A DNA stretch of 64,000 nt, from positions 496,001 to 560,000 of the forward strand of contig NIVC01000206.1 of assembly GCA_002269645.1 (NCBI GenBank), given 5' to 3'. Shown piece after piece: positions 2,745 to 54,370 of the stretch. The notes beneath the pieces were generated by a model. It did no database searches. It saw nothing but the letters and a program-made list of their open reading frames with translations, and had not been told where the DNA came from. Position 1 is the first letter of the stretch. Each line of letters begins with the position of its first letter. The DNA is from Macrostomum lignano (taxonomy: Eukaryota). The position numbers were made by a program, and so were the translations under genes.

Positions 2745-5700
2745 TGGCCATCTGCCGCGGAGTTCGCCACGAGGACCTGTCGAAAAGTCTCAATCAGCTG
2801 TTGCACCAGGATGCCAAATCCGTGACCGGCAGCAAAACTAGTTTAAGCGTACAATTTGTTGCTAGAAATCGTCACCGTTCTTCGGCCAATTCTCAGCAGC
2901 TGGTTGAGCAGACTCTCCGCTCATTGCACTCCGCCGCTTTGCTGCCTGGCGGTCTGCTGGCTCTGTGCAAAGCCGCCTCGCAACTGGACGCAGCTGATGT
3001 TCCCGGGCTGGGTGAAGATCGCCGGGCACAAGAGATTATCACTGATCACCGTCTGCAGGGCGTCATGTTGAAACGGCCGCGACTATTGCAACAGCTGGTT
3101 AGGCGTCATCCAGTGTTAGCTAGCGCCATAGCAACCGTTGTTAAGCGGGTGCAACAGAATGCGCAGAGTGCTCGACTGCCAACATCGGCTCCGGGTGCCG
3201 CTTCTGCGGTAAGGAACTGTGGTTATGGGGAAGATGTCGGGTTATGGCACAGCCTAGCATATTAGGACAGTGTCACTGTGTCAGTATGGCATAGGCTGCA
3301 GTGTCAGTATGGCATAGGCTGCAGTGTCAGTATGGCATAGGCTAGGCTGCAGTGTCAGTATGGCATAGGCTGCAGTGTCAGTATGGCATAGGCTAGGCTG
3401 CAGTGTCAGTATGGCATAGGCTGCAGTGTCAGTATGGCATAGGCTGCAGTGTCAGTATGGCATAGGCTAGGCTGCAGTGTCAGTATGGCATAGGCTAGGC
3501 TGCAGTGTCAGTATGGCATAGGCTGCAGTGTCAGTATGGCATAGGCTAGGCTGCAGTGTCAGTATGGCATAGGCTAGGCTGCAGTGTCAGTATGCATAGG
3601 CTGCAGTGTCAGAGTATGGCATAGGCTGCAGTGTCAGTATGGCATAGGCTGCAGTGTCAGTATGGCATAGGCTGCAGTGTCAGTATGCATAGGCTGCAGT
3701 GTCAGAGTATGGCATAGGCTGCAGTGTCAGAGTATGGCATAGGCTGCAGTGTCAGTATGGCATAGGCTGCAGTGTCAGTATGGCATAGGCTGCAGTGTCA
3801 GTATGGCATAGGCTGCAGTGTCAGTATGCATAGGCTGCAGTGTCAGAGTATGGCATAGGCTGCAGTGTCAGAGTATGGCATAGGCTGCAGTGTCAGTATG
3901 GCATAGGCTGCAGTGTCAGTATGGCATAGGCTGCAGTGTCAGTATGGCATAGGCTGCAGTGTCAGTATGGCATACGCTGCAGTGTCAGTATGGCATAGGC
4001 TGCAGTGTCAGTATTGCATAGGCTGCAGTGTCAGTATGGCATAGGCTGCAGTGTCAGTATGGCATAGGCTGCAGTGTCAGTATGCATAGGCTGCAGTGTC
4101 AGTATGGCATAGGCTAGGCTGCAGTGTCAGTATGCATAGGCTGCAGTGTCAGTATGGCATAGGCTGCAGTGTCAGTATGGCATAGGCTGCAGTGTCAGTA
4201 TGGCATAGGCTGCAGTGTCAGTATGGCATAGGCTGCAGTGTCAGTATGGCATAGGCTGCAGTGTCAGTATGGCATAGGCTGCAGTGTCAGTATGGCATAG
4301 GCTGCAGTGTCAGTATGGCATAGGCTAGGCTGCAGTGTCAGTATGCATAGGCTGCAGTGTCAGTATGGCATAGGCTAGGCTGCAGTGTCAGTATGCATAG
4401 GCTGCAGTGTCAGTATGGCATAGGCTGCAGTGTCAGTATGGCATAGGCTAGGCTGCAGTGTCAGTATGGCATAGGCTGCAGTGTCAGTATGGCATAGGCT
4501 GCAGTGTCAGTATGGCATAGGCTGCAGTGTCAGTATGGCATAGGCTGCAGTGTCAGTATGGCATAGGCTGCAGTGTCAGTATGCATAGGCTGCAGTGTCA
4601 GTATGGCATAGGCTGCAGTGTCAGTATGGCATAGGCTGCAGTGTCAGTATGGCATAGGCTGCAGTGTCAGTATGGCATAGGCTGCAGTGTCAGTATGGCA
4701 TAGGCTGCAGTGTCAGTATGGCATAGGCTAGGCTGCAGTGTCAGTATGGCATAGGCTAGGCTGCAGTGTCAGTATGGCATAGGCTAGGCTGCAGTGTCAG
4801 TATGGCATAGGCTAGGCTGCAGTGTCAGTATGGCATAGGCTAGGCTGCAGTGTCAGTATGGCATAGGCTGCAGTGTCAGTATGGCATAGGCTGCAGTGTC
4901 AGTATGGCATAGGCTGCAGTGTCAGAGTATGGCATAGGCTGCAGTGTCAGTATGGCATAGGCTGCAGTGTCAGTATGGCATAGGCTAGGCTGCAGTGTCA
5001 GTATGGCATAGGCTAGGCTGCAGTGTCAGTATGGCATAGGCTAGGCTGCAGTGTCAGAGTATGGCATAGGCTGCAGTGTCAGAGTATGGCATAGGCTGCA
5101 GTGTCAGAGTATGGCATAGGCTGCAGTGTCAGTATGGCATAGGCTAGGCTGCAGTGTCAGTATGGCATAGGCTAGGCTGCAGTGTCAGTATGCATAGGCT
5201 GCAGTGTCAGAGTATGGCATAGGCTGCAGTGTCAGAGTATGGCATAGGCTGCAGTGTCAGTATGGCATAGGCTGCAGTGTCAGTATGGCATAGGCTAGGC
5301 TGCAGTGTCAGTATGGCATAGGCTAGGCTGCAGTGTCAGTATGGCATAGGCTAGGCTGCAGTGTCAGTATGGCATAGGCTGCAGTGTCAGTATGGCATAG
5401 GCTGCAGTGTCAGTATGGCATAGGCTGCAGTGTCAGTATGGCATAGGCTAGGCTGCAGTGTCAGTATGGCATAGGCTAGGCTGCAGTGTCAGTATGGCAT
5501 AGGCTAGGCTGCAGTGTCAGAGTATGGCATAGGCTGCAGTGTCAGAGTATGGCATAGGCTGCAGTGTCAGAGTATGGCATAGGCTGCAGTGTCAGTATGG
5601 CATAGGCTAGGCTGCAGTGTCAGTATGGCATAGGCTAGGCTGCAGTGTCAGTATGCATAGGCTGCAGTGTCAGAGTATGGCATAGGCTGCAGTGTCAGTA

Positions 5701-6478
5701 TGCATAGGCTGCAGTGTCAGAGTATGGCATAGGCTGCAGTGTCAGAGTATGGCATAGGCTGCAGTGTCAGTATGGCATAGGCTGCAGTGTCAGTATGGCA
5801 TAGGCTAGGCTGCAGTGTCAGTATGGCATAGGCTAGGCTGCAGTGTCAGTATGGCATAGGCTAGGCTGCAGTGTCAGAGTATGGCATAGGCTGCAGTGTC
5901 AGAGTATGGCATAGGCTGCAGTGTCAGAGTATGGCATAGGCTGCAGTGTCAGTATGATACAGGTAACAGTTAACGCAACCAAGTAAATGGTTAAAATACT
6001 TACGTTTATTTTTCCTGGTTATCTCTGTTTATCTATAGCACTGAACATCAATTATAAGCTTGCCCTTGCGTAACGCCCCCCCCCCCAGGTCGCTGGCAAC
6101 ATGCCCCCTGGCGCCAATTACAACGTAGACTTCGAGTCCGTTCTAGACGAAGACGAGGACAACGATGGCGAAGGTGAGGACGGCGCCGCCGCAGCCGCCA
6201 TGCCGACACCATCGCCGATGCAACGCGGATCGCGCTCGCGTCCGACCTCTTCGTCAGCTTCCGGCGGAGCTTCGGGCGGTAGCGCCGGCCAAGTGTCGTC
6301 GGATTTCCTGCGCCAAGCGATGGCGCAAGCGTTCACTCTGATTCCAGCTAGGCAGAGGTTTGCTAACCAATTGCGAGCGCTGAGAGAGATGGGCATCACC
6401 GATGAGGAGGCGGCCCTACGAGTTCTCGAGCAGAATAATGGCGACCTGGAGCTCACTATTGATCACATGTTTAATTGA
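2745..6478 (+). CDS. UBL7: Ubiquitin-like protein 7 (UBL...UBA), last two coding exons; first exon not located (probably upstream of the window)
   Basis: Exon 2745-3208 (ttcAG acceptor, phase 1; GCG|gtaagg donor) and exon 6089-6478 (cccAG acceptor, phase 0, stop at 6478) splice in frame. PGLGEDRRAQEII...LQQLVRRHPVLASAIATVV resembles human UBL7 PGLSSDPIALGVL...LDTLVPAHPALVNAIVLVL. C-terminal QLRALREMGITDEEAALRVLEQNNGDLELTIDHMF is a UBA domain like UBL7 QLQQLRDMGIQDDELSLRALQATGGDIQAALELIF. Confidence 0.85.
3278..5956. repeat. Intronic minisatellite, 23-bp unit GTGTCAGTATGGCATAGGCTGCA with 22/25/27-bp variants, about 110 copies
   Basis: Directly visible tandem array filling the last UBL7 intron. 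Confidence 0.98.
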
Positions 6479-7348
6479 ACTTACGGACATTCTGTTCGTG
6501 TCGCGCTACTGTTAGTAATAAATATAAGTTGAACAATTTCTCTGAAATATTCACGGCTATTTGTTTCTATAAGCTGAAATTTCAGGCTCTCAAAGCGGCG
6601 GATGCAGATTAGCTCTTAGGCTTTCCGACTTGGATTGAGTAAATTCAATTGCGTTTCTACCCGTTTTTGCTTTTTTGCTTCTTTCTTCCTTCTTTCGTGT
6701 TCTTTGCTTTAAGTCAATGCGGCGTATATTATTGCCTTTTTCTGTTCAAAGCATGAGTTGAATAAAAATACGATTTCAACGTAATTGCTGCTGCAAAATA
6801 GCAAAATGATTCGCAAAGTTGTCTCTCTGATCTTTTATTTTATTGCTGCAGCAAATTTCGTCTTTAGTTTGTGTGTTCCATAAACAACATTAGATATATC
6901 CACAGAATATACACTGAATGGCGAATCGGCAGTTCTCTATGAAAGCGAAGTAAAATGCGCTCGCACTACTTATGTTGTGAAGGTTATAAGTAGCTGCGAA
7001 ATTTTCAAAGCAAATTTGAATGTAAAAGTCGAGCTTAAGAAAATTTTTAAAAGGTTTGAGTGGTTACTTTGACACTGCTGATGAATGCTGTGCTATGCTT
7101 ATAATTAATTTTGTGCATAACTTTGCTTGCACAAAGTCATGAGCAGTAGCAGCAATTGTTATTGCCTCATTGCAATGTACTTGTGAGTTAAAAAAAGCAG
7201 AAATAACTAGCAGATAACAAAACAGCAAAAAAGCACGCTAGTAGCAAAGCAGCTTGTTAGTAAGAAAAGTAACTAGCGGTTAAATTTTAATTCTGGCAAT
7301 CAGGCAATGCAAGACGCAAAAGCAGTTGCAAATCTCATGCAATCAAGC

Positions 7349-8431
7349 TCATCCTCCTAAACTTCCGCGATTGCTCACTGCAAAATGCTCGCCCACGCTT
7401 TCTCTCCTGCGCCACAATCCATCTAAGCCATTCCATGCCATGCCATCTAAGCTAACTGTGCAAGCCTTCTCAGCAGGAGTCATCGATTCAGTAGCAGAGG
7501 TGATGTTAGCCTCAATTGTTGGGCAGATGCCTGAACTTCTCATGCTCTGTCCTAAGCTTCGCCGAATTGTCGATCTGCAGGGGAGCGGAATTCCCATGTC
7601 GCCGAGGAATCTGTGACATCTGGGACTGAAGTGCAGCAGTCCAGTTACAATGCGCAGACTCGCTAAAGACCAAATCGGCCTACGCTTGCTGAAGTTGGCG
7701 GTGATGTCTTCAGCAGGTAGTTCCGAGAGCGAAGGAGAGCGAAACGAAGCCAATTTTGAGCAGTTGCATTGATGTCCCCATCTTTTCAGCTGAGCTGCCT
7801 CTGCTTTCAACGTGATGAAGCGAGCCTCGAGTAATTTCAGCTTTCGCTGCAGGTTAGCACTCTTTCTTTGTTCCGCTTTCAACTTCCTTATCACAGCATC
7901 TGGTGACGTAGACTTGCGGCCGCGTCCTGCGGTAGCGGAGATGCTCAAGGAGGTGTCCTCCAGTATCTGAGTGCCACTTCTAGCCTGCACCCTTTTAACG
8001 CGAGGCCGCTCCAATTGTGTCCTACTTCGGGGTGGGCGTCGTAGGCTCGGCTGCTGAGTCTCTTTGTACAAGTTCATGGTTGAGTGCGCAGTCCATATTA
8101 ACCGCGCGGTAGATTCATGATGCTGACTGGGGCACATGTACATATTATCGGCAAAGTGCTGGCTGCAGACGCACGCATTCTTCCACTTTGCCTCGTTTTT
8201 CCTGCCCAGGAGGTCAGCTCTGAAGATGCGCTTAGCCCAATCTTCGCATCTGAAGCGAAAAGGGGCTTGACAACGTAAAAACGCTCTCATCATTTCAAAA
8301 AATTAGCCAGCTGCCACTCACCTCTCTCTGGCTGCTGGAAAGCGGTGGAATCTAGTGCCCGGCGGACACTTTCCGGCGTAGTTGGGGCATCCGTAAGCAG
8401 CGCACTGAAGCCTCGAAGCAGACGCAGTCAT
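7349..8431 (-). mobile_element. THAP-domain P-element/THAP9-like transposase, spliced, truncated after the first catalytic Asp (336 aa)
   Basis: Exon 1 8431-8322 MTASASRLQCAAYGCPNYAGKCPPGTRFHRFPAARER, 72-nt intron 8321-8250 (GTGAGT...TTCAG, phase 2), exon 2 8249-7349 (W...VCSQHF...RL) together give a complete C2CH THAP domain. A coiled coil follows, then SPRCHRFL...LPCRSTIRR...CTVSLDGM, resembling the P-transposase SPxxYxxL...LPSxxTLxxW...CxLxFDEM segment, then a stop at 7349. Confidence 0.8.
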
Positions 8432-8923
8432 ACAAAAACAGTATCACAATAAGCCGCGTATTAAAACTCTAGCAGATATGCCTTCGGTATTAGCACTTTT
8501 GAAGCCAAACCTAGCTTCATCAGCACCAGCTTGGGCCATAGATAATGCAATACAGCAAAGACAGGCTAGCGCGATCAATAATGCATTTGACCTGCATGCT
8601 TTCACGCCACGAGCTCGTGCTAGAAAGCCCAAGGCATGCTGTCTATGGCACTAACTTAGAGCGCAGAGGCAGCAGAAGGCAGGGCCAGCCTAAAGGTAGG
8701 TTCTAAAAATAGCACAGTTTAGAAGGGGGGTGGGTTGGTTCTATCAAGCCTTGCTATATTCTGTGGACAAACCCGCAATAAATGGCAAAGGATTATTAAA
8801 GTGCCATTCAGCCTACTTAGTTTTTCTTCACAACAAGAGTAGCCAGTATAGAATATCATTCTTGTACAAGAAATTTTCTCAAAATGTGGGATTCGCCATT
8901 CTGTGTATATTCTGTGGATATAT

Positions 8924-9158
8924 CCCCTAGTTGCACTGGTGCAGAAGTCTGTGGTTTAATTGTTTATTTCATTTACTGACTGCAAATAAATGGCCACCGA
9001 TGGATACATCAAATATTCCCCATTTATACAAGTGTCTATGGCAAACATATTTTTGCCTCGGTCAATAAACTTGTCACTCAAGCATTTATTGTGCAAACAG
9101 TGCAAATAAATGAAATAAACAATTAAACCATAGACTGCTGCACCAGTGCAACTGGGGG
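8924..9158. mobile_element. MITE, about 235 bp, about 60-bp imperfect terminal inverted repeats
   Basis: Left CCCCTAGTTGCACTGGTGCAGAAGTCTGTGGTTTAATTGTTTATTTCATTTA is the reverse complement of right TAAATGAAATAAACAATTAAACCATAGACTGCTGCACCAGTGCAACTGGGGG; ATAT flanks both ends. Confidence 0.8.
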
Positions 9159-9398
9159 ATATATGATTGATCTTATTTCCCGCTGCCCCGAAAGAAATAA
9201 ATTTGCACTCGGCTTTGTACCATAGACTAAAAACTTAATTTTTCATTTTAAAGATTTTAAAGTAAACAAGAAAGTTCAACAAGTTCAAAATTCAGTTAAA
9301 GTTCAACACCACTGCCGTGCAAATTGATCTCGCCTTGGAATTCCAAATCGCGTAGCTCACTGCCACCTCGCAGACCGAAGTGATTTTTAAGTAGAAGA

Positions 9399-9484
9399 TA
9401 ATGCATGGTTTTTAGGGTTGTATTTCTTTAAATCCCCGAGAGCCGAGAGCCAAAGTTAATACAACCCGTAAAAACCATGCATTA
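9399..9484. repeat. Short foldback (about 26-bp arms)
   Basis: TAATGCATGGTTTTTAGGGTTGTATT ... AATACAACCCGTAAAAACCATGCATTA. Confidence 0.7.
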
Positions 9485-10774
9485 CCTCAATTAAATCCCT
9501 GCTTTCAAACTCCGGGATGTATTTAGATACAATTCGCAAAACAGTTTGAACCATAGTGCAAAGAGAGTTAAGGGGACGCAGCCCCCTGCGGGGGTGTGGG
9601 GGCGGAGCCCCCACATGTAGTATAGTGAATTTATAAGATATTCTATGGGTTTGAGGTCAGTATTTTACTTAAATCCCTAGAGCCGAAGGCTTTCGAGATA
9701 TTAATGACATAAAATTTGAATTAAAACATTTAAACTCAAAATTCTAACATTTAAACTACTTTAATTTTGCGGGATGTATTCAGATAAATCCCGGAGCCAT
9801 ACTTGTATGTCTATGGTTGAAGTTGGGGATGGGGATATGGGGGCGAAGCTATATGTCTTACCATAGACAAAATTTCATTAAGAAATTTCTCGAGTCACGA
9901 AAGAAGAGAAGAGAGAAGCTCGCTTATTTAGATACATACAAAAATCCTTGCAATATGTCCGGGAAAGTGATCGATTAAATCCCGCAAAATAAAATCTATG
10001 TCAATAACCTCCCTCAAAGTGTTAAGAATGGTTTTGTTATATTATTACTCTCGCTAAATTTGTAAATGGGGCTGGCTGTGGAGCTTTAAAGTGGTTTAAA
10101 TCACTTTATTAAACGCTATGGTCCGCTTTCATCTCGGAAAGTCAACTAGAAAGGATATAAAGCGAAACATGAGAGAAGCTGCGATTTTTAGTTTTGTGAG
10201 CAAGCCGAGCGGGTGAACTTGCGGGTTTCGCGAAAATTACATCCCCGAAAAGAAAAGAGTAGCCCACTGTGGCGTCTATGGCTTTTTTATGACCCTGAAA
10301 GTTCGAAAGCAGGGATTTAATAGTCCATAATCCATAGAAATAAAGATTTTCCGTGACAATATTTGCGTTCTCTGGGATTTTATTTGGTAACATTCAATAA
10401 TATCCCGTAAAGTCTTTATGTCTATGGTTTATACGAGATTACACATGCCTTTTTCGGGAGTTATTTTCATAAATCCCTCAAAACGCGTGTTTAATCCACA
10501 GATTCTATAAACACTGGTTTAATCTGATACTTAGAATCGGCGTCTCTCAGTTGCATAAGTGTCGCGGCTTGCAGTTGTACCATAGAAAGATTCCAGCGGT
10601 TCTCCTACCTCGGCGGTCTGGTGCTCCACGTGGAGGATTCTATTCTATGGTAAATTTATATCGCAGAAGTCCTTGCAGCAATATAGTTTTATTTCGTTGT
10701 ATAGTAATATCTTTCTTGATTTTCACTCTGTTCGTACCATAGACTAAAAACTTAATTTGGATTTCCTTTTTTTA

Positions 10775-11195
10775 GCTTCTGACTTGGCTAATGCATAGCT
10801 TTTATTGCTAAGTTAGAAAACGGAAATCCAAAGTGGAGACAGGTTGGGCCATAGAAAACATACACAGCCTGACTGAGAAACTTGACTGAGAGACAAGGCT
10901 CAATTAAATCTAGAATCGGACGTCCAAACTTGCTATATATAGCCAGAGTTTTGTCAAAGACAAAGCACAGCCTGTATAATTCAAGAAGGCGACTGCGCGG
11001 ACACGTAAACCGTCAGCTAATTGTATCAGCAGACAGTGGAAAGTGACAGTTCAGAGTCCCATTCTAGATTTAACTGCTTGTCTTTCAGTAAATTTCTAAG
11101 TCAGGATTTTTGTTGACTATGGCCCAACCTGTCTCAACCTTGGATTTCCGTTTTCTAACTTGGTAATAAAAGCTATGCATTAGCTTTTCAGAAGC
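10775..11195. mobile_element. MITE/foldback element, about 420 bp, about 150-bp imperfect terminal inverted repeats
   Basis: GCTAATGCATAGCTTTTATTGCTAAGTTAGAAAACGGAAATCCAAAGTGGAGACAGGTTGGGCCATAG at the left is mirrored by CTATGGCCCAACCTGTCTCAACCTTGGATTTCCGTTTTCTAACTTGGTAATAAAAGCTATGCATTAGC at the right. Confidence 0.85.
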
Positions 11196-12445
11196 GGACA
11201 GAAGCGGACTCAATAAAAATTGACAGTGAGAGCAGTGGTCACTTTGATCCTATGGCACTTTGACACCGAAAAGATTAATGAACTCAGTATGCGTAATATG
11301 CATAAATACTCATCGAGATCATCAGCGCATTGAACTGAATTCTCGTCACACGTTTGGGTTAGATTTGGCAGCATTAGTTTTTGCTGAGATGATACAGGCG
11401 CCGTTCTCATATCTTTTGCTCGAAGGAAACGAATAGACGTCATCTTCGAAGTTGCCTGAGCACACCTTTAGGTCTCTTAAGCGAACGGACTCTAGAGTCA
11501 CTAGCCCAGATTGTGCAGCCAGTTCGTTGCAGTCACGTCACTCAGAAGAAATTTGGCAATTGCACTCGATGGTGTTCAATGGGTTACGCCTCAGGACCAC
11601 CTGAATACGTCATAAGTAGCACGTCTTGGAAAGCGTGACTCATGGTTGAATTTCTGCTGCAGATGAAGGCGAGTCGGCTGTTGGGTGACGGAATTGTCGG
11701 CTGATTTTCCATGCAGGAATGGCATTCTTGCACTCTTGCGTGCAGGAATGAATGTCTATGGTAAAATCTCACTGAAAAAGCATTAGGCGCAGAAATGCAT
11801 TCCTGCACGGTTTTGTGCATTCCTGCACGATGAATAATCCGACAATGGGATTCCTTCACGTTCAATCGTGCGTGAAGGACATTGTGAACTCGTGACCGTG
11901 CAGGAATCATTCATTGTTCCGTGTGTGTAATCAAGCGAAGAAGTGACCACTTTTCATATTGAGTTGACACCAATTTTTTAGGATCTGTGGTGTGCGCTAT
12001 TATTTTTAGCACTGCACTGTCAACAGAGTAGAGAGCTAAGTTATCCAACGGTATTGCGTACGAGTATGAGACAACAGCCAATGATATGTTGGTCTTGAAC
12101 CACCTTGAATTGCAGCTGTGCGCACTCCTTAATCGGGTTAGCTCACGATTTATATAGCTGATCCCAAGGCTAAACAAATTGAGGATTATCTTAAAGGTTG
12201 AGTGAGATCCACTGGCGCTAAAGTCATTGACTAAGAAAGGAAGTTCATTTCTGCACTCAATTCAAGCGAGATATGCACACGCACCTAATTTTTACCAGCT
12301 GTTACCAGTACCTTTTATAATGCTAGCACATCAATTGTGTATTTTTACTAATGCAACAACTATAACTATTCTGAATCAATGCTTTCCTGTTAGTTGAACA
12401 TGTTTCTCTAATTTTCTACAAGGCACGAGTTGTTACTATAGTCAT

Positions 12446-13621
12446 TCAGGCATGGTTAAACAGGTATTTGATGACGAGCCGCATGCCAGGATCGATGTAG
12501 ATCTCTCGCAGACGTCTAGCCAGGGTGTTGTGCTCGCAGCTCCGCTCAGCAGGTGCTGGATAATGATGCAGCCGGTCTTTCGCTAGGCTGCTCACTCTGT
12601 AGACAGCGAAGGCTTGGTAGCAGGACTCCACTTTGACTGGAATGCTGTTCCGGTTTATAGCAATTTCATCCGTGATGATGCTGCGATCGTATTCAGTAAC
12701 GCTGCAGAACCGCTTCTTGCTGAAATAGGTGCGAGAGCAGGGATCGTAGAGTCCGTTTCGAAAGCGGCTGTTGGCGCAGAGTACGTCCAGTTTGGGCTTG
12801 GCGCTGAAGTAGTAAATTCCCTGAGCAATGTTGTCCAAGCTCCATGGATCCCACTCCAGATCTGGATCAACTGAAATCATCAGATCAACTTTATCTGCCA
12901 AATTGTCGTAAATGTAGTTCAGGTACATATTTCTGAGGACACTCATTGTGATGCCGCGATCAACGAGTTCTTCTTCCGTACGCTGCTGTCCCCAGCCGGG
13001 TCTGTGCACCTTCCCGGACCTGTATGTGATGTTAATTTTGCACGGGGCTCTTGAGTTTATTGGCGTGCATCCGAGAATCACCGTCTGATTGTGTTTCCGA
13101 CGCACGTCGTGAAGAAACTCTCGGGTGCCATCGTTCGAGTCATTCTCAACGAAAATCATCCAGTAGTCTTTGAAGAGCTTGCCCAATCTGTGCAACTCCA
13201 CGACGTTTTTCTGCAAGCGCTCCTTGGCGTTTCGCACTGACGCGACAAATACGGCAGTTTTGGTGCGCATCCAGTCTCTCCCAATACGCGTTCGATAGTT
13301 TTGGTCAAGCTCGCGATTCTCTCGTCGCATAAGAGGCATACGTTCGCGTGTATGGACGAAGTACATGGAGCTGTTCTGCAAGTGCAAGACTTCAGCGTGT
13401 CCGTAGCTAAAATCGGAAGATTTTTTCTCAATAAGTTCAGGATCGAGTTGTGTCACAGCGCTTCTGCTGGTTCTGTCTGGACGGTTGATAGAAAGTATAG
13501 CGTTGGGAATTTTTCTTATCTGATGAAAGTAGTCCGTTGTGAGGTGTACATGTAGCATGGATAAACAAAACAGGACATTGCATGAAACAAGAATGCCGGC
13601 GAAAAATTTCATGCCGATCAT
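12446..13621 (-). CDS. Intronless type II membrane GT-A glycosyltransferase, CAP59/CMT1 (GT69)-like, copy 1 (391 aa)
   Basis: N-terminal hydrophobic signal anchor and stem, then motifs VFVASVRN, IFVENDSNDGT, MSVLRNMYL, DPD (DxD), YD, VESCYQAFAVY, CEH, IYIDP. These are recalled as typical of CAP59_mtransfer-like proteins; family assignment is from memory. Confidence 0.75.
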   Translation of the reverse strand: MIGMKFFAGILVSCNVLFCLSMLHVHLTTDYFHQIRKIPNAILSINRPDRTSRSAVTQLDPELIEKKSSDFSYGHAEVLHLQNSSMYFVHTRERMPLMRRENRELDQNYRTRIGRDWMRTKTAVFVASVRNAKERLQKNVVELHRLGKLFKDYWMIFVENDSNDGTREFLHDVRRKHNQTVILGCTPINSRAPCKINITYRSGKVHRPGWGQQRTEEELVDRGITMSVLRNMYLNYIYDNLADKVDLMISVDPDLEWDPWSLDNIAQGIYYFSAKPKLDVLCANSRFRNGLYDPCSRTYFSKKRFCSVTEYDRSIITDEIAINRNSIPVKVESCYQAFAVYRVSSLAKDRLHHYPAPAERSCEHNTLARRLREIYIDPGMRLVIKYLFNHA

Positions 13622-14579
13622 TTTGCTATCGGAATGTACGTGAGCCTTTTTTGACTAGTAAATAGCGCGTGTAATGCATTTTTCTTTTAGGATTGGCTGT
13701 TGAATAACTCGTTTAAGAATTGGAATGATAAAAACAAATTAAAACTATATACAATATATTTTTAATTGAATTAATAACTTGGCCAAAAAAATACATTTAC
13801 ACAACTTTCTTCTGTAAAAACTATTTTGTTAAGCTTTTCTCGACTTTTATAACAGAATAATTATTTAATAATGACACGAATTTTGAAATGTACGATTTCC
13901 TAATAAAACACGTGTCTCTTTGATTTCCACTGCAATTGTCATTGTCTGACAAACGTAGGTAAAATTGCTTGTTAGAAATTTTTAGGAACTTTAAATTGGG
14001 ACATCGGGCTGAAAATTATTACTGATTTCTACAGAAGTACGCGCGTACCTTTAATCATTAGGGACCCAAAAGATAACAAAATTAAATTTCTATCTGGAGT
14101 TTTTTCTGAATTGATCAAATAATTCTAAAATTTATTATTTATGAGTTGTTTTCTATATTTGTTTGTGTTTGTGTTTCTTGTATTGGCTAGTTAATTTACT
14201 TTTATGGGTTAACTGAAGAAATGAAGTACAGGAGTTGTTTGTATTAGTATTGCACAGTTCTTGTGTTTAGGGGTCTGGCGCCTGTCTCGGGGTTCATTTT
14301 AAATAAATTGAATTTAAAGTAAGATACATTGACTCAGAACTTGACCTTCTTGTCCAAAATCCTTACATTCGATGCCCCATGTATGTCATGCTTGTACACT
14401 TTATTAGAAGGCCCATATCTTAATTTGAAACAGTTAATGGACATCTTAATTCTTAACCTGATATTACCACGATCACATAAATCTGAAATTTTTGGCCCGA
14501 GGCGGCTTCTTAAATTAAGAAAAGTTGCTGTTTTTACTGCATGGTTCATTACTTCCATAGCCTACATTGCATGTAGTAT

Positions 14580-14820
14580 GGGGTTGTAGCCTGGTGGTTA
14601 GGGCATCGGACTCGCGACTGAAAGATCTGGGTTTCAATTCTCGACCCACTCGGAACAGTTTGTGTCCTTGAACAGGACATTTAACTCTGCATTGCTTCAG
14701 TTCACCCAGCTGTAAAATGGGTGCCAGCATTAGCTGGGGTAGTTGAGGATGTGTGTGGCGACCCTCATGCAGTCCTTGGACTGAACAGCCGTACGCAGTC
14801 ATCAAATGCGCCGCGCAAAA
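14580..14820 (+). mobile_element. tRNA-derived CORE-type SINE, copy 1
   Basis: A-box-like TAGCCTGGTGG and degenerate B-box GGTTTCAATTC, followed by TGTGTCCTTGAACAGGACATTTAACTCTGCATTGCTTCAGTTCACCCAGCTGTAAAATGGG, which resembles the MIR/CORE domain. Second copy at 57037-57289. Confidence 0.8.
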
Positions 14821-15231
14821 GCGACAGAATTAGACACCGAATGAACAGACACGTGCTGATCATACTTACATTCACATGCAGTCTACAGATATGATATTAC
14901 CACGAGGGCAAAGGGTAAGGGTGCCAAAGGGAGAGCCTTTTATGTCATAGACACATAATTAGACAGGTACATACTATTTTATAGGAGCAGAAAGAAAGGA
15001 TTCAATTTTCAAAATGGAAGAAGTGGATATCAACTTTGAAATAGACTAATTTCAACTTCGACTGGCTGGACAACTTTGAATTACTTGACTTAGCTGTAAT
15101 TGGTACTGGTCTGTAGACACAGCGGTAGCCCCTGAAAGCCCGCAGACAGGTACATGTAGATGCGTGGGGCTGGTCAGGGTGGTCCGCCGGTCCGTCCTGC
15201 AGCGTGATCTTTGTAGGAAATAAGGGGGCTT

Positions 15232-15757
15232 GCCTAGTCGCCCGAAGGAACTATTGTAGATGAGCCGTGGAATGCTGTCGGGCTGGGAGACCTCGTCAAT
15301 GGACGGGTCGGTCCGAGGTAGCGTAGCCGGTCTCTCGTAAAGAAAGGGCAGTGATAAACAAAAGTGCTGAGTATCTTCATTGTCGTACGCGCAAAAAGGG
15401 CAAAGTTCACTATCGAGATCGCCTCGGAGAAAGCAGTGCCTGGCGAGGTAGCCATGGCCGGTAAGGTCATGACAAGGGCTGGAGATGATGGTGGCGCAGC
15501 TTCGCTCCGGCTTCTGCCCGCTTCTTCTCCGCGATTTTCAGTCAGGGATCAACCCTGGCGTCGCCGTGGTTTGTCCTGACTGTGGCCTTGAGCCCCAAAC
15601 GGTGGCCCACCTCTTCAACTGCCCTGCCTATCTGACGCAGCTTTGTCCGGGTGATCTATGGACTAACCCAATCGAGACGTGCACCTTTCTGGAGTCGGCT
15701 GCCCTCAGCAGGCTGGGACCCCGGTCGTAGGTTAACACATACAACAAGGGCTCGAAT
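15232..15757 (+). mobile_element. 3' fragment of a non-LTR retrotransposon (C-terminal CX2C...HX4C domain)
   Basis: ORF 15485-15730 VAQLRSGFCP...CPDCGLEPQTVAHLFNCP...LWTNP, a common LINE ORF2 C-terminal motif, followed by a short TACAACAA tail. Confidence 0.65.
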
Positions 15758-18520
15758 TTCTGACGATTGGTGACCTTCGAGGGCATAGGGACCAGGGGAA
15801 CAGGGCCAAAGAAAGAGCCAAAGCCGCCAACTCAATGTCTGCCAACTCGTTCCCCGGAAACCCTGCGCGCCCTGGGATCCACTTCAGCCTGACACTATTG
15901 CTACTGGCCAGGAGGTTGAGCTGCCGGGCGCAGTCAGCGACTGTCCGGGAGTTTGTGGTGGTGTGGCAAAGGGCCTGTAAGAGGGTCTCCTGAGCGAAGC
16001 CGTTTCCAAGCACGGCCTACTCAAGTTTATCGACCAGGACGTGCAGCGCGCTTTCATTGCGTGCGACCCGCCCGAAAAGCGTGCTGGTTTTCGCTGAGAG
16101 GCTTGTTCTTCAGCTCAACAGAGAGGAGGCGCCAGAGCACCAGTCTTTCCATCAGCTTGACCAGGGAGAAGGTCAGACTGATTGGTCTGAAGGATTTGAT
16201 AGAATGGTAGTCCGGGCGGCCTGGCTTCGGAATGAAGATCACCTTTGCCTCGGTCCCAAGCCTGTGGGACATGGCCAAGCGTTATGCATGCCCGAAAAAG
16301 GCTTACGCAGTTTACGCAGGAAGCCTATGCATTTAACCGTCTCTTTTAGGAGGGCAGGTACAATGCCGTCGGGTCCTGGGGCTTTGAAAGGTTTGAAGTA
16401 GTTTGCCGCGGTACTCTGTGATGATAGAGTCAGCCAGCGCGTGACCTCCTTCAGAGTGGCCCGGAGTGGTCAGGTTGGCCGGCTCGTTGGGGGAAAACGC
16501 AGAGAGCATTACATCAAGCGTTTCCCCTGGGTTATCCATGGACGTGCCGTCGGTGCGTTTGACCGAGGAGAGCTTAGACATTTTGTCCAGCGTAAGTGCT
16601 TTAACAATTCTGGAGGTGGAGTGTAAGCCTCTAGCTCCTCGCAGTATTGACGCCATTTCTGAGCTTTCGCGTTCCTGACCTGCCTTTTAAACTCATGGAT
16701 TGCTTCATGATAGGCGGTTTGGTCCGCTGGGCTCTTGGCTTCAGTTGCTCTGCAATGGAGTCTCTTAGCTCTGCGGCGGAGGTTGCCGAGCTCGTTCCAC
16801 CACTGCGCAGATTTTTTTCCCTTTATAGGCTTTTAAAGGACAGGATGCCTCAAAGGCGGCGGTTAGCGTTTCTGTCAACAAAGTCGCGCACTCATCCGCT
16901 CCTTGGCAAGTCGACGTGATCGTGGATGGTTGGCCGGAAAACCGATAAACTCCTTCAGGGCGAGCCCGAAGGTTTCCCAATCAGTGTTTCTGATGTCCAG
17001 TCTCCATGTAACACGATTTTGCTGCGCGCGGCCATCAGGTTGAAGGAGATGAACTTGTGATCGGAGAGTGAGGAGGCTGGAAGCACCCGCCACGCCCCAA
17101 TGCTTTGGTAGAGCCCGGGTGTTGCGAGTGTGGTATCGATCACCTCCTATCACAGCCCGTTGTCAAATGTAGGGGTGGACCCAGAGTTGCAGAACTCAAG
17201 GGTCGTAGAGGCAACGTAGGCTAGGAGTCTTCGCCTCTCTGATTAATGCCCTTGCTGCCCCAGTGAGTATGGTGGGCGTTGAATGTCGCCAGCAACCATG
17301 AGCTCGCAGTTTTTGGCAGAGCAAAGCTCGACCAGCGTAGCGAGGGTTCTAACGACGACCGAAGCATCACCTGGTAGGTAAAGCGAGGCAATGAGAGTGG
17401 TTTTTCTAGGAAGGAGATCTTCAGATTGGATGACGCAGATGTCCCTGTTAGACAGGTCCTATCTGTGTCACGCGCTGAGCGTTTTGCCGGGAAAAATGCA
17501 GTCTCTGGGAGGCTGATTGGCACTGCCGGGGTAAGTATAGAAACAGTTGTAGCCGGAAGGGGCGTTCTGAGGCTAACCTCTGAGGGTCCAAGGTTCCTGG
17601 ACGAGGATGAGCCCCGGTATGTGGAGCTCGGCCTAACGCATAAGGTTGACCGAGGCTGCGACGCAGTGCTGCAAGTTGATCGGCATCGGATTCCCAGGCT
17701 GCTGATCATTATCACGCAGTTGGGGAATCGTGGAGCAGGTCATCCTCCTCAGAGGTCATCCTCCTCATCCTCGGAGGTGGTTGGCCCGCAGACCTCCATG
17801 GGAGTTTCAGCGTCCTCGGCAGTTAAGGTGGCTGTGGAGTCCTCCGCGGACGTGAGCCCAGCGTGGACGTTTCCGTCGCCTCCCCTGTGTGCTTCGGCGC
17901 CGTCACTACCCATACCCTCCGCCTCGTTGGTCAGGTCGATGCGGGTGACGCCAACTTCCTAGTGAGTGACAGCCTCTAACCAGTCAGTCAGCGCCTCCAC
18001 GCTTTTAACCTGGTCTTCTGGCTGTTGGGTTGGAGCACGAGAAGTGCAGACCCGCTCAAGATGCGCCCGGAGGTTCCTGGCCTGGTCCAGCGCGCGCTGA
18101 ACCAGACCGGACCTCCGGGGGCTCCTGGCAGGTCTGCAGTTGCTCACTTTCTCAGCTTCTCAGCTTCAGAGGCCTCTAACCAATTGGTTCGATTTCGCCA
18201 ATGGCCACAATAATTTTTGGTTACTCCACCAAAGCTGCCATGCGATTCACTCTTCTTGCATGTACGAACGTATGTGGGCCAACCTCCGGGGCATACAAAG
18301 TGTGTACATGCACAGCCAGACGATAAGAGAGTCAGGCCGGGCCGGACGCTATGCACCCTGTCTAAGCGTGTGGTATGTTGTACGTGTCCGTGTGCGGGGT
18401 GACACTTCTCAGGTGTCAGTTTTTGGCGGCGGTGCCCAAAGCGCCTATGTGAACGATATAAACTAGCCATCCTGGTGTGAGTTTTCGCACATAATAATTC
18501 CAACCTACAGCTCATCTCCA
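15758..18520 (-). mobile_element. Degenerate, internally deleted LINE (APE endonuclease - partial RT - RNase H), LOA/Lian-like
   Basis: APE start PINLQHCVAASVNLMR*...LILVQEPW (about 17680-17580) and FNAHHTHWGS...N; RT N-terminal motif VIFIPKPG...SFRPISL...NQHAFRAGR...ESALHVLV; RNase H end LKWIPGRAGFPGNELAD. Multiple frameshifts and stops. The 5' boundary is approximate. Confidence 0.85.
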
Positions 18521-19071
18521 TTGAAGGCTACTTCAGGTGCCAATGGCGCGCCTTTGCAGATTTTGGTAGACATTTTCCCGCCAATCTACTAAACGTAGCA
18601 CTCTACGAAAAGTAGTATCGAAAAGTGCGTCAATGACGAAAACTGTTAATGAGAGTAGCGGGTTTTTATATTCACCCCATGGAGAAAGAAAGGAATGGAT
18701 GATGGAGTGCTAATCTGACTGAGATATTTTTGTTTTGCTCTTTTTCGACTTTTGGCACCTAGCTGGTACCCCCGACACACTTATCAAATTGTTTTGGCTT
18801 AATCCGCTTACATATACATGTATGCATTGTGCGTAGGCACAAAATCCGCCTAAGTAGATAAAGCTGTCTCCATTGAATTACTGATCCTGTTTGTCACACG
18901 TACGCAAGTCTGCACATAAACAAAAACTATAATTTGCTACAAAGTACAAATCATCTACGCAAGTTAAACCCTGTTTTGCCACCTGTTGCCATAACTTATC
19001 GCGTATTTTTGTGAAATTTTGTTATTGCCAACAGTGAAAATATTTTTGCTTAATGTTTTTGTGTTGCCCTC

Positions 19072-19178
19072 CAGGGGCGCCAGCACCAAGGGGCTTTTAG
19101 CACCTGGGGCTTTAGCACCAGGGGCGCCAGCACCAGAGGCGCCAGCACCAGGGACTTTAGCACCAGGGGCGTTAGCAG
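19072..19178. repeat. Short GC-rich minisatellite, about 15-16-bp unit (AGCACCAGGGGC core)
   Basis: About 7 visible degenerate copies. Confidence 0.85.
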
Positions 19179-19900
19179 GAGCCTATCAGTAGCACGTGCA
19201 TGTCGATCTAGATCTCATTTCTCAAGCTCATGCAATACTTCGCAGAATATATTTTCAAATCGTTGAGCTGGAGCTGGCTGATGAGGCCAGCAGAAGTTGT
19301 TAATGATGCGAGCATTTTGAGGTTCTAATAACCCAAACTGCACAGTTGTAATGTTGTTACTAATGGAGTTTTGCAATAGACTACAAAATCAGAGACAGAG
19401 CTTAGATCGATCAGTTTAAATCGATGGCATTGTCTCCAAGGCGCTCCAATTTGCGGTCAATGGAAACGCAGCACCTATAGGGCAATGAGTGCAGACACCT
19501 GTGGCTAGACTCTTGTCTGACCTTATAATTGTGCATTCCATGGAAGTCAACACTAATATAAGCTTATCCGGCATATGATCAGTCTGGACAAAATATGCTT
19601 ATGAGTGAGCAACAGCTGTTTTCTTCTATAGCATCTGTTTTCTTTATGGATGTGCAGCACAAAGGATCGATGCAAAATACTTACAAAACAAGGTCGCCCG
19701 ATCGAGCGAGTTTAACCAATTATTTTTGCTACCTGTTTACCATCCATGCATGCAGGGCTCACATGCAATACACTGTAGGTATCATATTTTTTGTATTTCT
19801 TTGTATATTTGTTTTTTGTCTTTCGCAAGAAAATTATTTTTTTGTCGTTTGCTACTCTTATTACTCCCTTCACCTCCAGTTTTAGTAGCATAAATTAGAC

Positions 19901-21049
19901 TCAATCTGTAGCTATAATGAACCATTCAGGTATGATCAAACATCGCAGACGTCTAGCCAGGGTGTTGTGCTCGCAGCTCCGCTCAGCAGGTGCTGGATAA
20001 TGATGCAGCCGGTCTTTCGCTAGGCTGCTCACTCTGTAGACAGCGAAGGCTTGGTAGCAGGACTCCACTTTGACTGGAATGCTGTTCCGGTTTATAGCAA
20101 TTTCATCCGTGATGATGCTGCGATCGTCTTCGGTAACGCTGCAGAACCGCTTCTTGCTGAAATACGTTCGAGCACAGGGATCGTAGAGTACATTTGAAAA
20201 GCGGCTGTTGGCGCAGAGTACGTCCAGTTTGGGCTTGGCGCTGAAGTAGTAAATTCCCTGAGCAATGTTGTCCAAGCTCCATGGATCCCACTCCAGATCT
20301 GGATCAACTGAAATCATCAGATCAACTTTATCTGCCAAACTGTCGTAAATGTAGTTCAGGTACATGTTTCTGAGGACACTCATTGTGATGCCGCGATCAA
20401 CGAGTTCCTCTTCCGTACGCTGCTGTCCCCAGCCGGGTCTGTGCACCTTCCCGGACCTGTATGTGATGTTAATTTTGCACGGGGCTCTTGAGTTTATTGG
20501 CGTGCATCCGAGAATCACCGTCTGATTGTGTTTCCGACGCACGTCGTGAAGAAACTCTCGGGTGCCATCGTTCGAGTCATTCTCAACGAAAATCATCCAG
20601 TAGTCTTTGAAGAGCTTGCCCAATCTGTGCAACTCCACGACGTTTTTCTGCAAGCGCTCCTTGGCGTTTCGCACTGACGCGACAAATACGGCAGTTTTGG
20701 TGCGCATCCAGTCTCTCCCAATACGCGTTCGATAGTTTTGGTCAAGCTCGCGATTCTCTCGTCGCATAAGAGGCATACGTTCGCGTGTATGGACGAAGTA
20801 CATGGAGCTGTTCTGCAAGTGCAAGACTTCAGCGTGTCCGTAGCTAAAATCGGAAGATTTTTTCTCGATAAGTTCAGGATCGAGTTGTGTCACACGGTGT
20901 TTGCTTCGCTCTAGCTGATTGATAAAAATAATACCATTTGTAAATTTTCCGAATTGATAGAAGTAGTCCGTTGTGAGATGTATCATGGATATACAAAACA
21001 AAACATTAAATGAAACAAGAAGGCAGGCAAAAAGTTTCTTGTCGAACAT
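19901..21049 (-). CDS. CAP59/GT69-like glycosyltransferase, copy 2 (likely start MFDKK at 21049); C-terminus frameshifted
   Basis: Core 19943-20894 is near-identical to 12506-13457. A 43-bp deletion relative to copy 1 removes EIYIDPGMRLVIKYL and shifts the frame, so this may be a hypomorph or young pseudogene. Confidence 0.7.
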   Translation of the reverse strand: MFDKKLFACLLVSFNVLFCISMIHLTTDYFYQFGKFTNGIIFINQLERSKHRVTQLDPELIEKKSSDFSYGHAEVLHLQNSSMYFVHTRERMPLMRRENRELDQNYRTRIGRDWMRTKTAVFVASVRNAKERLQKNVVELHRLGKLFKDYWMIFVENDSNDGTREFLHDVRRKHNQTVILGCTPINSRAPCKINITYRSGKVHRPGWGQQRTEEELVDRGITMSVLRNMYLNYIYDSLADKVDLMISVDPDLEWDPWSLDNIAQGIYYFSAKPKLDVLCANSRFSNVLYDPCARTYFSKKRFCSVTEDDRSIITDEIAINRNSIPVKVESCYQAFAVYRVSSLAKDRLHHYPAPAERSCEHNTLARRLRCLIIPEWFIIATD

Positions 21050-21902
21050 TTTGTTGCGTACTTGATTCGTTTGTTTGTTTTTTGCCGTGACAATTTTTTT
21101 ACCAGTCGTTGACTTGTAGAAAAAGCTTAACACTAGAAGTACTATCTGAATTAAAAAGCTTTATTTTATTGTGATTCGCACACTTCACTCTTTTTATACT
21201 TCACGAAATGCTACTCGTTATAACTGTTTGACAATTTTAGTGAATTGGAAGAAAATACAACTATGGTAATAGTTTTAATTAAAGTAGTTGTAGATTTAAT
21301 TTTTTTAATTACGGTTGATTATTTACTTTTGTTATTTTCATAAAACTTTTGTGTAAAATTTAAAATAACTATGCTAAGCATGTTGCGCGGCCTGATGATG
21401 CCTGAGCCTGAGCCTGTTTATATGTAAGCTATTGAACTTTTTCCTCATCTCGATGCAACAGTGTATAGTGCAATGCAATATAATTGAAGTGCAGTGTAGG
21501 TCAGGTATAGGATCGGATGAATTATACTTTTCATTGCTGTAACTATTGACTTGCAAGGAAGTTATAACTTATAAGATAAATTTCTATAAAGTTATAAAGT
21601 TATAAGCAAAATAAATTAAAAAAGAGGTGAAAAAACTTTCTTATGAACTAATTATGTTGTAAATACAATTTTTATTTAATAATGTTTGAGATTTCAAAGA
21701 GAATTTGAAAATTTTGAATTGATTTTTGTTCATAACAAAGGTCGATAGGCTAGGCCTAGGCCTATGACGTATATTATTATAATATTTAAACAAAAGTGCT
21801 AACTTTAAATATTTTGTTCAATAATAAAAAAGTTGTTAAATTCAGGTAATGTAGCTCGCTTGATAAACAGTGAATAAATGAAGGAAATGAAGAAGGATCA
21901 AC

Positions 21903-35039: not shown

Positions 35040-35790
35040 TAACCTTGCTATCAGGGGTTGCTTGCTGTCTGGGGGATGCTTGCGATCTGGGGGATGCTTG
35101 CTATCTGGGGGATGCTTGCTATCTGGGGTCTGGGGGAATGCTTGCTATCTGGGGGATGCTTGCTATCTGGGGTCTGGGGGAATGCTTGCTATCTGGGGAT
35201 GCTTGCTATCTGGGGGATGCTTGCTATCTGCGGGATGCTTGCTATCTGGGGGATGCTTACTATCTGGGGTCTGGGGGAATGCTTGCTATCTGGGGATGCT
35301 TGCTATCTGGGGTTGCTTGCTATCTGGGGATGCTTGCTATCTGGGGTTGCTTGCTATGGAGGGGATGCTTGCTATCTGTGGGATGCTTGCTATCTGCGGG
35401 ATGCTTGCTATCTGGGGATGCTTACTATCTGGGGTCTGGGGAAATCCTTGCTATTTGGGGATGCTTGCTATCTGGGGGATGCTTGCTATCTGCGGTATGC
35501 TTGCTATCTGGGGGATGCTTACTATCTGGGGTCTGGGGGAATGCTTGCTATCTGGGGATGCTTGCTATCTGGGGTTGCTTGCTATCTGGGGATGCTTGCT
35601 ATCTGGGGTTGCTTGCTATGGGGGGGATGCTTGCTATCGGGGGATGCTTGCTATCGGGGGATGCTTGCTACCTGGGGGATGCTTGCTATCGGGGGATGCT
35701 TGCTACCTGGGGGATGCTTGCAGTCTGGGGGATGCTTGCTATTTGGGGATCGATGCTTGAATGCTGTCTGAGGATGCTTGCCGTCTTGGG
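35040..35790. repeat. Minisatellite, 17-18-bp unit ATGCTTGCTATCTGGGG(G)
   Basis: Visible array; it explains the spurious GGCLLS/GDACYL ORFs. A remnant of the same family lies at 38520-38760. Confidence 0.95.
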
Positions 35791-41399: not shown

Positions 41400-41620
41400 A
41401 TCAAATTTGAGAAATCTAAACTATGATTGGGGAATGTCTAGATTTGGAATTCGATGTGTCTATTAAATCAAGAATGGGAGATGTCTAGACCGTGATTGGA
41501 AGATGTCTAGACTAGGATTTGGATTTGTCTAGACCATGATTGATATTTGTCTAGATCAGGACTGGGAGTTGTCTAAATCACGATTGATCCCGACAGTTAA
41601 TTGATATTTGTCTAAATGCT
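41400..41620. repeat. Degenerate minisatellite, about 22-bp unit (TGTCTAGA core)
   Basis: Repeated ATGTCTAGA/TTGTCTAGA at about 22-bp spacing. Confidence 0.75.
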
Positions 41621-41766
41621 TTCGTAATAAGTAGAACCTAGGTATGTATTTGGCATTGAAGAAGACAATTGCTTTCTTTGAAAGAGGTCTTTTGCTATTC
41701 TAATTATTGTTTACTGCACAGGACTAATAGTTTTTCTACTCTAAAATTCTCACTACTTGTGAGTAG

Positions 41767-53700: not shown

Positions 53701-54327
53701 TCGCTCTTATCAGCCTCCTATCCCACCCACCCAATTTACACTCGCTCTTATCAGCCTCCTATCCCACCCACCCAATGTACACTCGCTCTTATCAGCCTCT
53801 TATCCCACCCACCCAATGTACACTCGCTCTTATCAGCTTCCTATCCCACCCACCCCAATGTACACTCGCTCTTATCAGCCTCCTATCCCACCCACCCCAA
53901 TGTACACTCGCTCTTATCAACCGAGTAGTTCACTTGACTTTCACACTGCAGATCCGTCGCGCCTGCTTCTCCGTTCTGTCCAACGCTGCCCTGACCAGCC
54001 CCGAGCTCCGATCCAGCCTGGTTAAAAGCCGCTTCGTTGAACGATTCAATGCCTTACCGTCTGGCGAGCAGCAGCTGTCGAAATCTGGCAAATCAGCTGC
54101 GGCTGATTGGCTGAGACTGCTGGGCAATTTGAGCATCTCGCCCGATGGCCAGGTGGCTCTGTTAAGCCAGCCCTCGTGTCTGCAGAAATTGTGCGATTTG
54201 GCTACTACCAACGATCTGCGTAGACAGGTTTGAAATGCTCTGTTCTGTTTTTAACCTATGTAGCGGTTTTTACAGAACCCATAGATGAATGGACACTGAG
54301 ACACAGACTACAGACAGACAGACAGAC

Positions 54328-54370
<43 letters not shown>

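Follow-up and report, generated by a model that had tools for sequence, protein, structure and literature searches.

The DNA stretch analysed here (the window, 64,000 nucleotides in full) is part of contig NIVC01000206.1 (674,802 bp) of the Macrostomum lignano assembly GCA_002269645.1, and it carries two closely related genes, copy A and copy B, for predicted glycosyltransferases (GTs) of the GT-A type (Table 1). An earlier note on this DNA had described two intronless genes, and each copy is indeed one uninterrupted open reading frame (ORF) on the minus strand, found exactly where it had been placed. The two proteins are 91% identical over 376 amino acids, and copy A is 99% identical to BOX15_Mlig008488g3, which is encoded on a second contig. 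The ORF of copy B reaches upstream of its ATG to a GTG at position 21133. In the DNA alignment of the two copies, homology comprises the coding sequence (CDS) and approximately 40 nt of 3' sequence, and the flanks are unrelated. The gene pair is real and represents a new animal member, in fact a new animal family, of a known kind of enzyme.

The proposed protein architecture, an N-terminal signal anchor followed by a stem and a GT-A domain, was borne out by hydrophobicity, structure prediction and structure comparison. The hydrophobic 19-mer has a Kyte-Doolittle value of 1.99 in copy A and 2.18 in copy B, and the values range from 1.99 to 2.45 across all paralogues tested. The AlphaFold2 model, obtained with a 12-sequence alignment (predicted local distance difference test score, pLDDT, 74.6; predicted template modelling score, pTM, 0.70), comprises an N-terminal helix (residues 2-45), a helical stem (61-93) and a core of alternating strands and helices (122-387). 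Foldseek comparison of this model with the PDB returned GT-A glycosyltransferases only (probability 1.00, E 1e-8 to 1e-6, 11-14% identity), among them COLGALT1, PcManGT, TarP, ppGalNAc-T2 and the Chlorella virus hyaluronan synthase; sequence searches of the PDB gave no useful match. In addition to the motifs listed in Table 1, copy A contains LRN (residues 229-231), SCYQAFAVY (333-341) and IYIDP (374-378). All motifs previously reported for the pair are therefore present in copy A, but IYIDP is absent from copy B of the window owing to a 43-bp deletion. When 62 relatives were aligned (alignment A3), E159, N160, S162, D164 and R167 were invariant, and D161, T166, R230, N231, D252-x-D254, D293 and C362-E363-H364 were invariant or nearly so. 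In the bacterial members of a 209-sequence group table, R167 is mostly replaced by lysine. Copy A has three N-X-S/T sequons (N83, N178 and N197) and six conserved cysteines. Together these features fit a type II, metal-dependent nucleotide-sugar transferase facing the lumen of the endoplasmic reticulum (ER) or the Golgi; the lumenal orientation is suggested by the combination of sequons, conserved cysteines and hydrophobic anchor.

Table 1. Features of the glycosyltransferase gene pair and of its surroundings (positions in the window).
Feature	Position	Strand	Remarks
Copy A	12446..13621	(-)	CDS intact, one exon, 391 aa; encodes a GT-A glycosyltransferase with a type II anchor; annotated on NIVC01000206.1
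Copy A, N-terminal hydrophobic signal anchor	13547..13606	(-)	Approximately residues 6-25; Kyte-Doolittle 19-mer 1.99; AlphaFold2 helix 2-45
Copy A, catalytic GT-A domain	12461..13264	(-)	Approximately residues 120-387; AlphaFold2 core, Foldseek GT-A, hidden Markov model (HMM) and hhalign matches to viral homologues
Copy A, ENDSNDGTR nucleotide-binding motif	13121..13147	(-)	Residues 159-167; equivalent of GT2 'DDGSTDGT'
Copy A, DPD	12860..12868	(-)	Residues 252-254; DxD metal/diphosphate-binding motif; D254 invariant in every group
Copy A, CEH	12530..12538	(-)	Residues 362-364; conserved; His a putative third metal ligand
Copy B	19901..21049	(-)	Single-exon CDS, 382 aa from ATG; C-terminus changed by frameshift
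Copy B, 43-bp deletion junction	19942..19943	(-)	GCGA/GCGA microhomology at bounds; EIYIDPGMRLVIK... removed, frame shifted
Homogenised tract, copy A	12506..13456	(-)	dS 0.04 vs copy B
Homogenised tract, copy B	19943..20893	(-)	Counterpart of copy A tract
Spacer between copies	13622..19900		6.3 kb; degraded retroelement pieces and ~240-bp dispersed repeat
RNase H remnant	15732-16013		Weak retroelement match, 20.7 bits
~240-bp dispersed repeat	14580-14822		SINE-like (short interspersed element) or MITE-like (miniature inverted-repeat transposable element); 82-85% identity among copies

The proteins had been called CAP59/GT69-like. Against the Pfam profile PF11735 (CAP59_mtransfer), which has a gathering threshold of 28.8 bits, copy A scores 17.1 bits (E 0.0046, profile positions 18-222 of 242) and copy B gives no match at E <= 1. 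The best paralogue (P0002) reaches 27.6 bits and P0005 16.7 bits, the others do not match, and all eight M. lignano proteins scanned singly fall below the threshold. The threshold is exceeded by P0008, a protein from a metagenome contig (32.8 bits), and 58 of the 62 members of the wider family match PF11735 at E <= 0.01. At the same E-value, 44 of the 62 match the GT2 profile PF00535 (threshold 23.3 bits), for which P0002 gives the highest score among the M. lignano proteins (18.5 bits), below threshold and covering profile positions 6-52 only. The CAP59/GT69-like label is thus justified as a distant relation of the family as a whole, but not for the two window copies taken individually. Judged by these scores, the relation to PF11735 is one of clan level, short of family membership. 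The proteins are best filed in an uncharacterised CAP59-like subfamily of giant viruses (nucleocytoplasmic large DNA viruses, NCLDV) and metagenomes, with which they share a full-length profile match, the anchor, an LGCxxNxxxC loop and R167. This large subfamily is in turn remotely related to fungal CAP59/GT69 and to GT2.

Word-indexed homologue searches were insensitive (3, 12 and 4 matches, with known paralogues missed), and phmmer was run exhaustively against 1.84 billion cluster representatives, including NCBI and UniRef eukaryotes, instead. This gave 401 matches at E <= 1e-3 and five at E <= 1e-30. Above 103 bits only M. lignano and flatworm-like proteins were recovered; the score drops from 193 to 103 bits, and then follow metagenome proteins of approximately 300-340 amino acids with at most 36% identity. 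None of the 30 representative matches looked up had an organism name other than M. lignano, in agreement with the earlier suggestion that this is not a standard vertebrate or insect family. Relatives in bacteria and in large DNA viruses, also anticipated, were found in both. The IMG/VR database contains 21 loci with homologues, including giant virus metagenome-assembled genomes (GVMAGs) and seven complete genomes of 346-381 kb, which we take to be Marseilleviridae. The neighbouring genes are in part NCLDV-like: the homologues in the complete genomes are flanked by genes for DNA ligase, ankyrin and MORN proteins, and on the metagenome contigs with near relatives there are genes for DNA polymerase B, thymidine kinase, RING finger, FtsJ and Fapy glycosylase proteins as well as for other glycosyltransferases. 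At the closest viral locus (L001) the neighbours are ORFans with no Pfam match. The best viral structural match in BFVD, far ahead of the rest, is a glycosyltransferase of Marseillevirus LCMAC102 (E 1.7e-22, 26% identity). Scanning the contigs of bacterial metagenome-assembled genomes (MAGs) with a 12-sequence alignment revealed 24 loci in Bacteroidota, Verrucomicrobiota and Proteobacteria with 21-28% identity, one of them on a 2.88-Mb chromosome; metagenome-contig scans with flatworm-only profiles yielded no relatives. On a 52-kb giant-virus-like contig (Logan SRR30597339, L057), a family member is clustered at 9065-12392 with Gly_transf_sug (GT32-like) and GT25-like genes, and a NAGPA-domain protein is encoded approximately 9 kb upstream. 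The arrangement suggests a viral glycan-synthesis cluster and may hint at a pathway.

The position of the flatworm proteins among these relatives was addressed with a neighbour-joining tree of 208 sequences and 272 columns (200 bootstrap replicates, with divergent bacterial members as the root). The flatworm clade was monophyletic in 200/200 replicates. Because the backbone of the tree was not resolved, placement was judged by group profiles, by shared indels and cysteines, and by the composition of the sister group across the bootstrap trees. The sister group contained P0008 in 175/200 replicates and any bacterium in 9/200. P0008 (locus L054) is encoded on a densely packed metagenome contig of 1.3 kb and 37% GC (ENA ERZ23498939, scaffold_69336), and in common with the flatworm proteins it has Cys295, otherwise specific to them, and the extended H(R/K)PG loop. 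For each of the 16 flatworm proteins the NCLDV profile gives a higher score (132-198 bits) than the bacterial one (87-135 bits), the gap being 35-69 bits, and hhalign gives a probability of 100 and E 4.5e-48 over 265 columns for the NCLDV group vs E 3.9e-31 for the bacterial group. The flatworm, viral and metagenome proteins have the LGCxxNxxxC loop (Cys185/Cys194) and R167 in common; most bacterial sequences show a gap at the loop and another residue in place of R167. An N-terminal anchor was found in 16/16 flatworm, 18/21 viral (86%), 119/147 metagenome (81%) and 4/25 bacterial proteins. Profile scores, hhalign, the cysteine loop with R167 and the anchor independently favour an affinity of the flatworm proteins with the viral and metagenome proteins rather than with the bacterial subfamily. 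The enzyme had earlier been thought to be retargeted to the secretory pathway in the animal. However, the anchor and the lumenal-type cysteine loop already exist in the viral and metagenomic relatives, and since the anchor is shared with them it does not appear to have been added in the animal.

The window copies had been described as a duplicated pair, but they belong to a larger family. At least six divergent paralogue groups are dispersed in the M. lignano genome. The paralogues are 37-71% identical to each other, with saturated dS (synonymous divergence) between groups, and all close named matches are M. lignano proteins (Mlig026086, 011967, 008975/021081/022679, 033934 and 030790/003076/029645). 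They were located on five contigs besides that of the window. The four paralogue groups whose loci were read are all intronless, and P0002, P0003 and P0006 are single-exon genes on separate contigs; P0006 adjoins a CHD1-type gene and another paralogue a long terminal repeat (LTR) retrotransposon. Fragments P0007, P0010 and P0076, which share 53-64% identity with a single M. lignano subgroup and whose short contigs contain M. lignano-like satellites or a THAP-like element, indicate that the family is also present in related flatworm-like genomes. The ratio of nonsynonymous to synonymous divergence (dN/dS) is 0.21-0.45. No poly(A) trace of a retrogene origin was seen for copies A and B, and all paralogues examined are intronless; the intronless state is compatible with retroposition as well as with an intronless ancestor and does not distinguish between them. 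In the literature on Macrostomum and on CAP59 in giant viruses no description of the present GT family was found.

Window positions 5000-21782, including both GT copies and the spacer, have a colinear counterpart at 96-98% identity on the second contig, NIVC01002680.1 (L049). This is consistent with a homeologous or haplotypic duplicate and fits the partly duplicated genome of M. lignano. Comparison of the two contigs bears on the condition of copy B. In the window, the 43-bp out-of-frame deletion has replaced the last 19 residues of copy B by CLIIPEWFIIATD*, and IYIDP is lost; the counterpart on the second contig is intact and ends in ...RRLREIYIDPGMRLVIKAMFDHT*. The lost segment is conserved in copy A and in paralogues P0002 and P0003, and it forms the last beta-strand in the AlphaFold2 model. 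Since a conserved C-terminal strand has been removed by a frameshifting deletion, window copy B is probably a null or crippled allele. The divergence between copies A and B is uneven as well, with dS 0.54 and dN 0.24 in codons 1-57 and dS 0.04 in codons 58-372. Such a contrast within one CDS indicates that the copies are old duplicates, the core of which (approximately 950 bp) was later homogenised by gene conversion. The same unevenness is repeated in the A/B pair on the second contig, indicating that the homogenisation predates the separation of the two loci.

The pair is surrounded by intron-bearing animal genes. The GC content at third codon positions (GC3) of the GT genes is 0.56-0.59, inside the host exon range of 0.50-0.73. 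Exons of ATIC (AICAR transformylase/IMP cyclohydrolase), confirmed by Pfam, occupy window positions 59573-62147 (+), and an ATIC intron holds a 22-bp satellite array (60900-61317). In a large multi-exon gene at 41600-57000 (+) the introns consist almost wholly of tandem satellites with units of 19-71 bp (e.g. 44682-45427, 46161-47571 and 50876-51688). Inside the left-hand neighbour gene there is a 2.7-kb array of a 23-bp satellite (3278-5956; 108 copies with 92% match), which occurs on the second contig too, at 86-92% identity. The earlier description of satellite-filled introns in the neighbours is accordingly correct, the units found there being 19-48 bp. The names UBL7 and RTTN given to neighbours were confirmed neither by Pfam nor by PDB sequence searches; for the exons of the 41600-57000 gene, to which the RTTN label had been attached, Pfam gave no match except a weak COMM-domain at 56274-56894. 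The picture of a transposon-dense island is weakly supported, namely by sub-threshold RNase H and THAP remnants and one dispersed repeat of approximately 240 bp. Further copies of this repeat occur in the window at approximately 35304-35489 and at L050 (5841-6066), L051 (1507-1732) and L052 (1533-1769), and three paralogous GT genes have a copy no more than 8 kb upstream of them. A THAP-domain-like ORF with a weak PF05485 match lies near the GT pair (7349-8293, minus strand), and a similar ORF directly follows a truncated GT-family fragment on a flatworm-like metagenome contig (L056, 675-1364). These THAP-like ORFs may represent a P-element/THAP9-like transposon family active around the GT genes.

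Taken together, a horizontal origin of the GT family is plausible, with a probability of roughly 60%. Ancient acquisition followed by domestication fits the integration into the host genome, the intronless members, the GC3 within the host range and the dN/dS values. It also fits the contrast between a small monophyletic flatworm clade and a very diverse viral and metagenomic radiation, no closer animal homologue having been detected among the cluster representatives searched. The earlier note had spoken of an alien GT, and this idea is sustained by the distribution, the profile scores and the shared indels, but not by a supported nesting in the tree. The direction and source of the transfer, the lumenal localisation, the metal dependence and the sugar donor are points that we infer, and they can be combined as follows. 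A macrostomid ancestor would have acquired the gene in a single ancient horizontal event from a giant virus or another unsampled microbe, and the gene would then have adapted to the host codon composition, duplicated and dispersed under purifying selection. By its N-terminal anchor the catalytic domain would be positioned in the lumen of the ER or Golgi, ENDSxDGTR, DxD and the C-terminal His would bind the nucleotide-sugar and a divalent cation, and a hexose would be transferred to a glycan or glycoprotein of the secretory pathway. This hexose may be mannose, by analogy with the distant GT69 relationship as the only pointer. A more specific proposal is possible though tentative: a giant-virus-type GT, from a virus or a related unsampled microbe, may have been domesticated in macrostomids, have diversified there and now build a lineage-specific secretory glycan, e.g. 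on adhesive, mucus, eggshell or seminal-fluid glycoproteins. If true, it would count among the few instances in which an animal has co-opted a glycosylation enzyme of viral type.

Several observations weigh against a horizontal origin or against parts of this scheme. The tree backbone has essentially no bootstrap support, with values near zero at the deeper nodes. The immediate sister P0008 lacks the anchor, has no close IMG/VR relative and comes from a metagenome contig of only 1.3 kb and 37% GC. Some of the approximately 380 metagenome relatives could be protists or other animals, and the lineage restriction was drawn from mostly unlabelled cluster representatives, not from eukaryotic genome collections. 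The Marseilleviridae identity of the complete genomes is presumptive, being drawn from genome length, flanking gene content and the BFVD match. The dN/dS of recent pairs is calculated from very few substitutions, the exact protein was found on genome-assembly contigs only, with no transcript contig in that search, and the 43-bp deletion may have arisen during assembly.

The unsupported backbone and the many metagenome relatives that could be eukaryotic also speak for vertical descent, the most serious of the alternatives. An ancient eukaryotic GT-A family of the wider CAP59-like clan would then have been kept in macrostomids and lost or diverged in other sampled animals, and giant viruses would have captured copies from their protist hosts. 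The family is old in the flatworm lineage, as seen from the 37-71% identity and the saturated dS, and related fragments exist in other flatworm-like genomes. Moreover, the type II anchor, the cysteine loop and the N-glycosylation sequons are eukaryotic secretory features that the viral proteins have in common. Nevertheless, we consider this descent rather doubtful: nothing outside Macrostomum-type sequences exceeded 103 bits among the 1.84 billion representatives, 0/30 of those looked up were a named eukaryote other than M. lignano, all examined members are intronless, and the fungal GT69 model gives 17-28 bits vs 132-198 bits for the viral profile.

It might further be asked whether the genes are decaying relics, non-functional and persisting merely as open frames. 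The frameshifting deletion in window copy B, the frameshift in the related fragment L055, the truncation of the L056 fragment beside its THAP-like element and the above-mentioned restriction of the exact protein to genome-assembly contigs would all be in line with decay. Such a state is improbable for the family, however, as full-length ORFs and the catalytic residues invariant in the 62-member alignment are maintained in copy A and in no fewer than five further paralogue groups despite saturated dS between groups, the dN/dS is 0.2-0.45 and copy B is intact on the second contig. Quite improbable, too, is acquisition of a conventional bacterial GT2-type enzyme that was fitted with an anchor later. 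Some of the 24 bacterial MAG loci do lie on large contigs, including the 2.88-Mb chromosome, PF00535 is matched by 44/62 members, and UniRef calls some paralogues 'Glycosyltransferase family 2 protein'. Against this stand the greater distance of the bacterial homologues (21-28% identity, profile scores 35-69 bits lower), the lack of the Cys185/Cys194 loop, R167 and the N-terminal anchor in most of them and their presence in the sister group in 9/200 bootstraps, as well as GT2 Pfam scores of at most 18.5 vs 23.3 bits that cover the nucleotide-binding motif only. A contaminant or a chimeric assembly, which the earlier note had asked to be checked and which the viral or metagenomic nature of the nearest non-flatworm relatives could bring to mind, is hardly credible, as the genes lie inside the 675-kb contig among intron-bearing animal genes, between ATIC and M. 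lignano-type satellites, the 17-kb neighbourhood is colinear on the second contig at 96-98% identity, GC3 matches that of host exons, and paralogues occur on five other contigs, one of them adjoining the CHD1-like gene.

In the laboratory, M. lignano serves as a model in research on regeneration, stem cells, bioadhesion and sexual selection, and RNA interference (RNAi) and transgenesis are available for it. An apparently lineage-restricted flatworm GT family therefore offers a tractable animal system for the role of a widespread viral GT subfamily. Under the favoured horizontal origin, the family would be a possible instance of genes passing from giant viruses or microbes to animals and adding to glycan diversity; under vertical descent it would be an ordinary lineage-specific GT expansion.

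Among the known systems close to the flatworm proteins are the Marseillevirus LCMAC102 glycosyltransferases of the A0A481YUL9 type. These have the same architecture from the N-terminal anchor to the C-terminus and the same motifs (ENDSxDxTR, LGCxxNxxxC, LRN, DxD, SCF..Y, CEH and (N/D)P), and the profile match is 187 bits (E 5e-58). However, they are only 23-31% identical to the flatworm proteins, in which the stem is longer by approximately 50 residues, the HRPGWG loop after Cys194 is extended and C282, C295 and C334 are additional conserved cysteines, and which are encoded by chromosomal animal genes. Of the six GTs that Marseillevirus encodes, biochemical studies exist for L230 and R707 only (PMC9614988), and in the cited Marseillevirus GT literature no link is drawn to the present family. 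The fungal CAP59/Cmt1 proteins (PF11735, GT69) are likewise comparable in type II topology, GT-A fold and DxD motif, the localisation of the flatworm proteins being a predicted one, and it is such Golgi type II GT-A transferases that come nearest to the flatworm proteins in probable function. The GT-A fold has been predicted for GT69 (PMC8476585), Golgi localisation was shown for Neurospora crassa GT69-2 (PMC8092235), and Cmt1p is a GDP-mannose-dependent alpha-1,3-mannosyltransferase (Sommer et al., 2003, cited in PMC8092235). The named GT69 members Cmt1p, Aspergillus fumigatus ClpA and N. crassa GT69-2 are Golgi alpha-1,3-mannosyltransferases; the eight proteins scanned from M. lignano stay below the Pfam threshold. 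With the inverting GT-A enzymes of GT2 (PF00535) they share the nucleotide-binding motif, ENDSNDGT aligning with 'DDGSTDGT', and the structural neighbours PcManGT, TarP and Chlorella virus hyaluronan synthase, but the matches are sub-threshold over approximately 50 residues and identity in the structural alignments is 11-14%. Finally, horizontally acquired genes are known in animals, for example the carbohydrate-active enzymes of bdelloid rotifers and nematodes. The flatworm GT family resembles them in being intronless and apparently patchily distributed, in having its closest relatives, as far as the searched representatives show, outside animals, and in its host-adapted codons and family expansion; it differs in that these relatives come mainly from giant viruses and metagenomes and not from bacteria or fungi.

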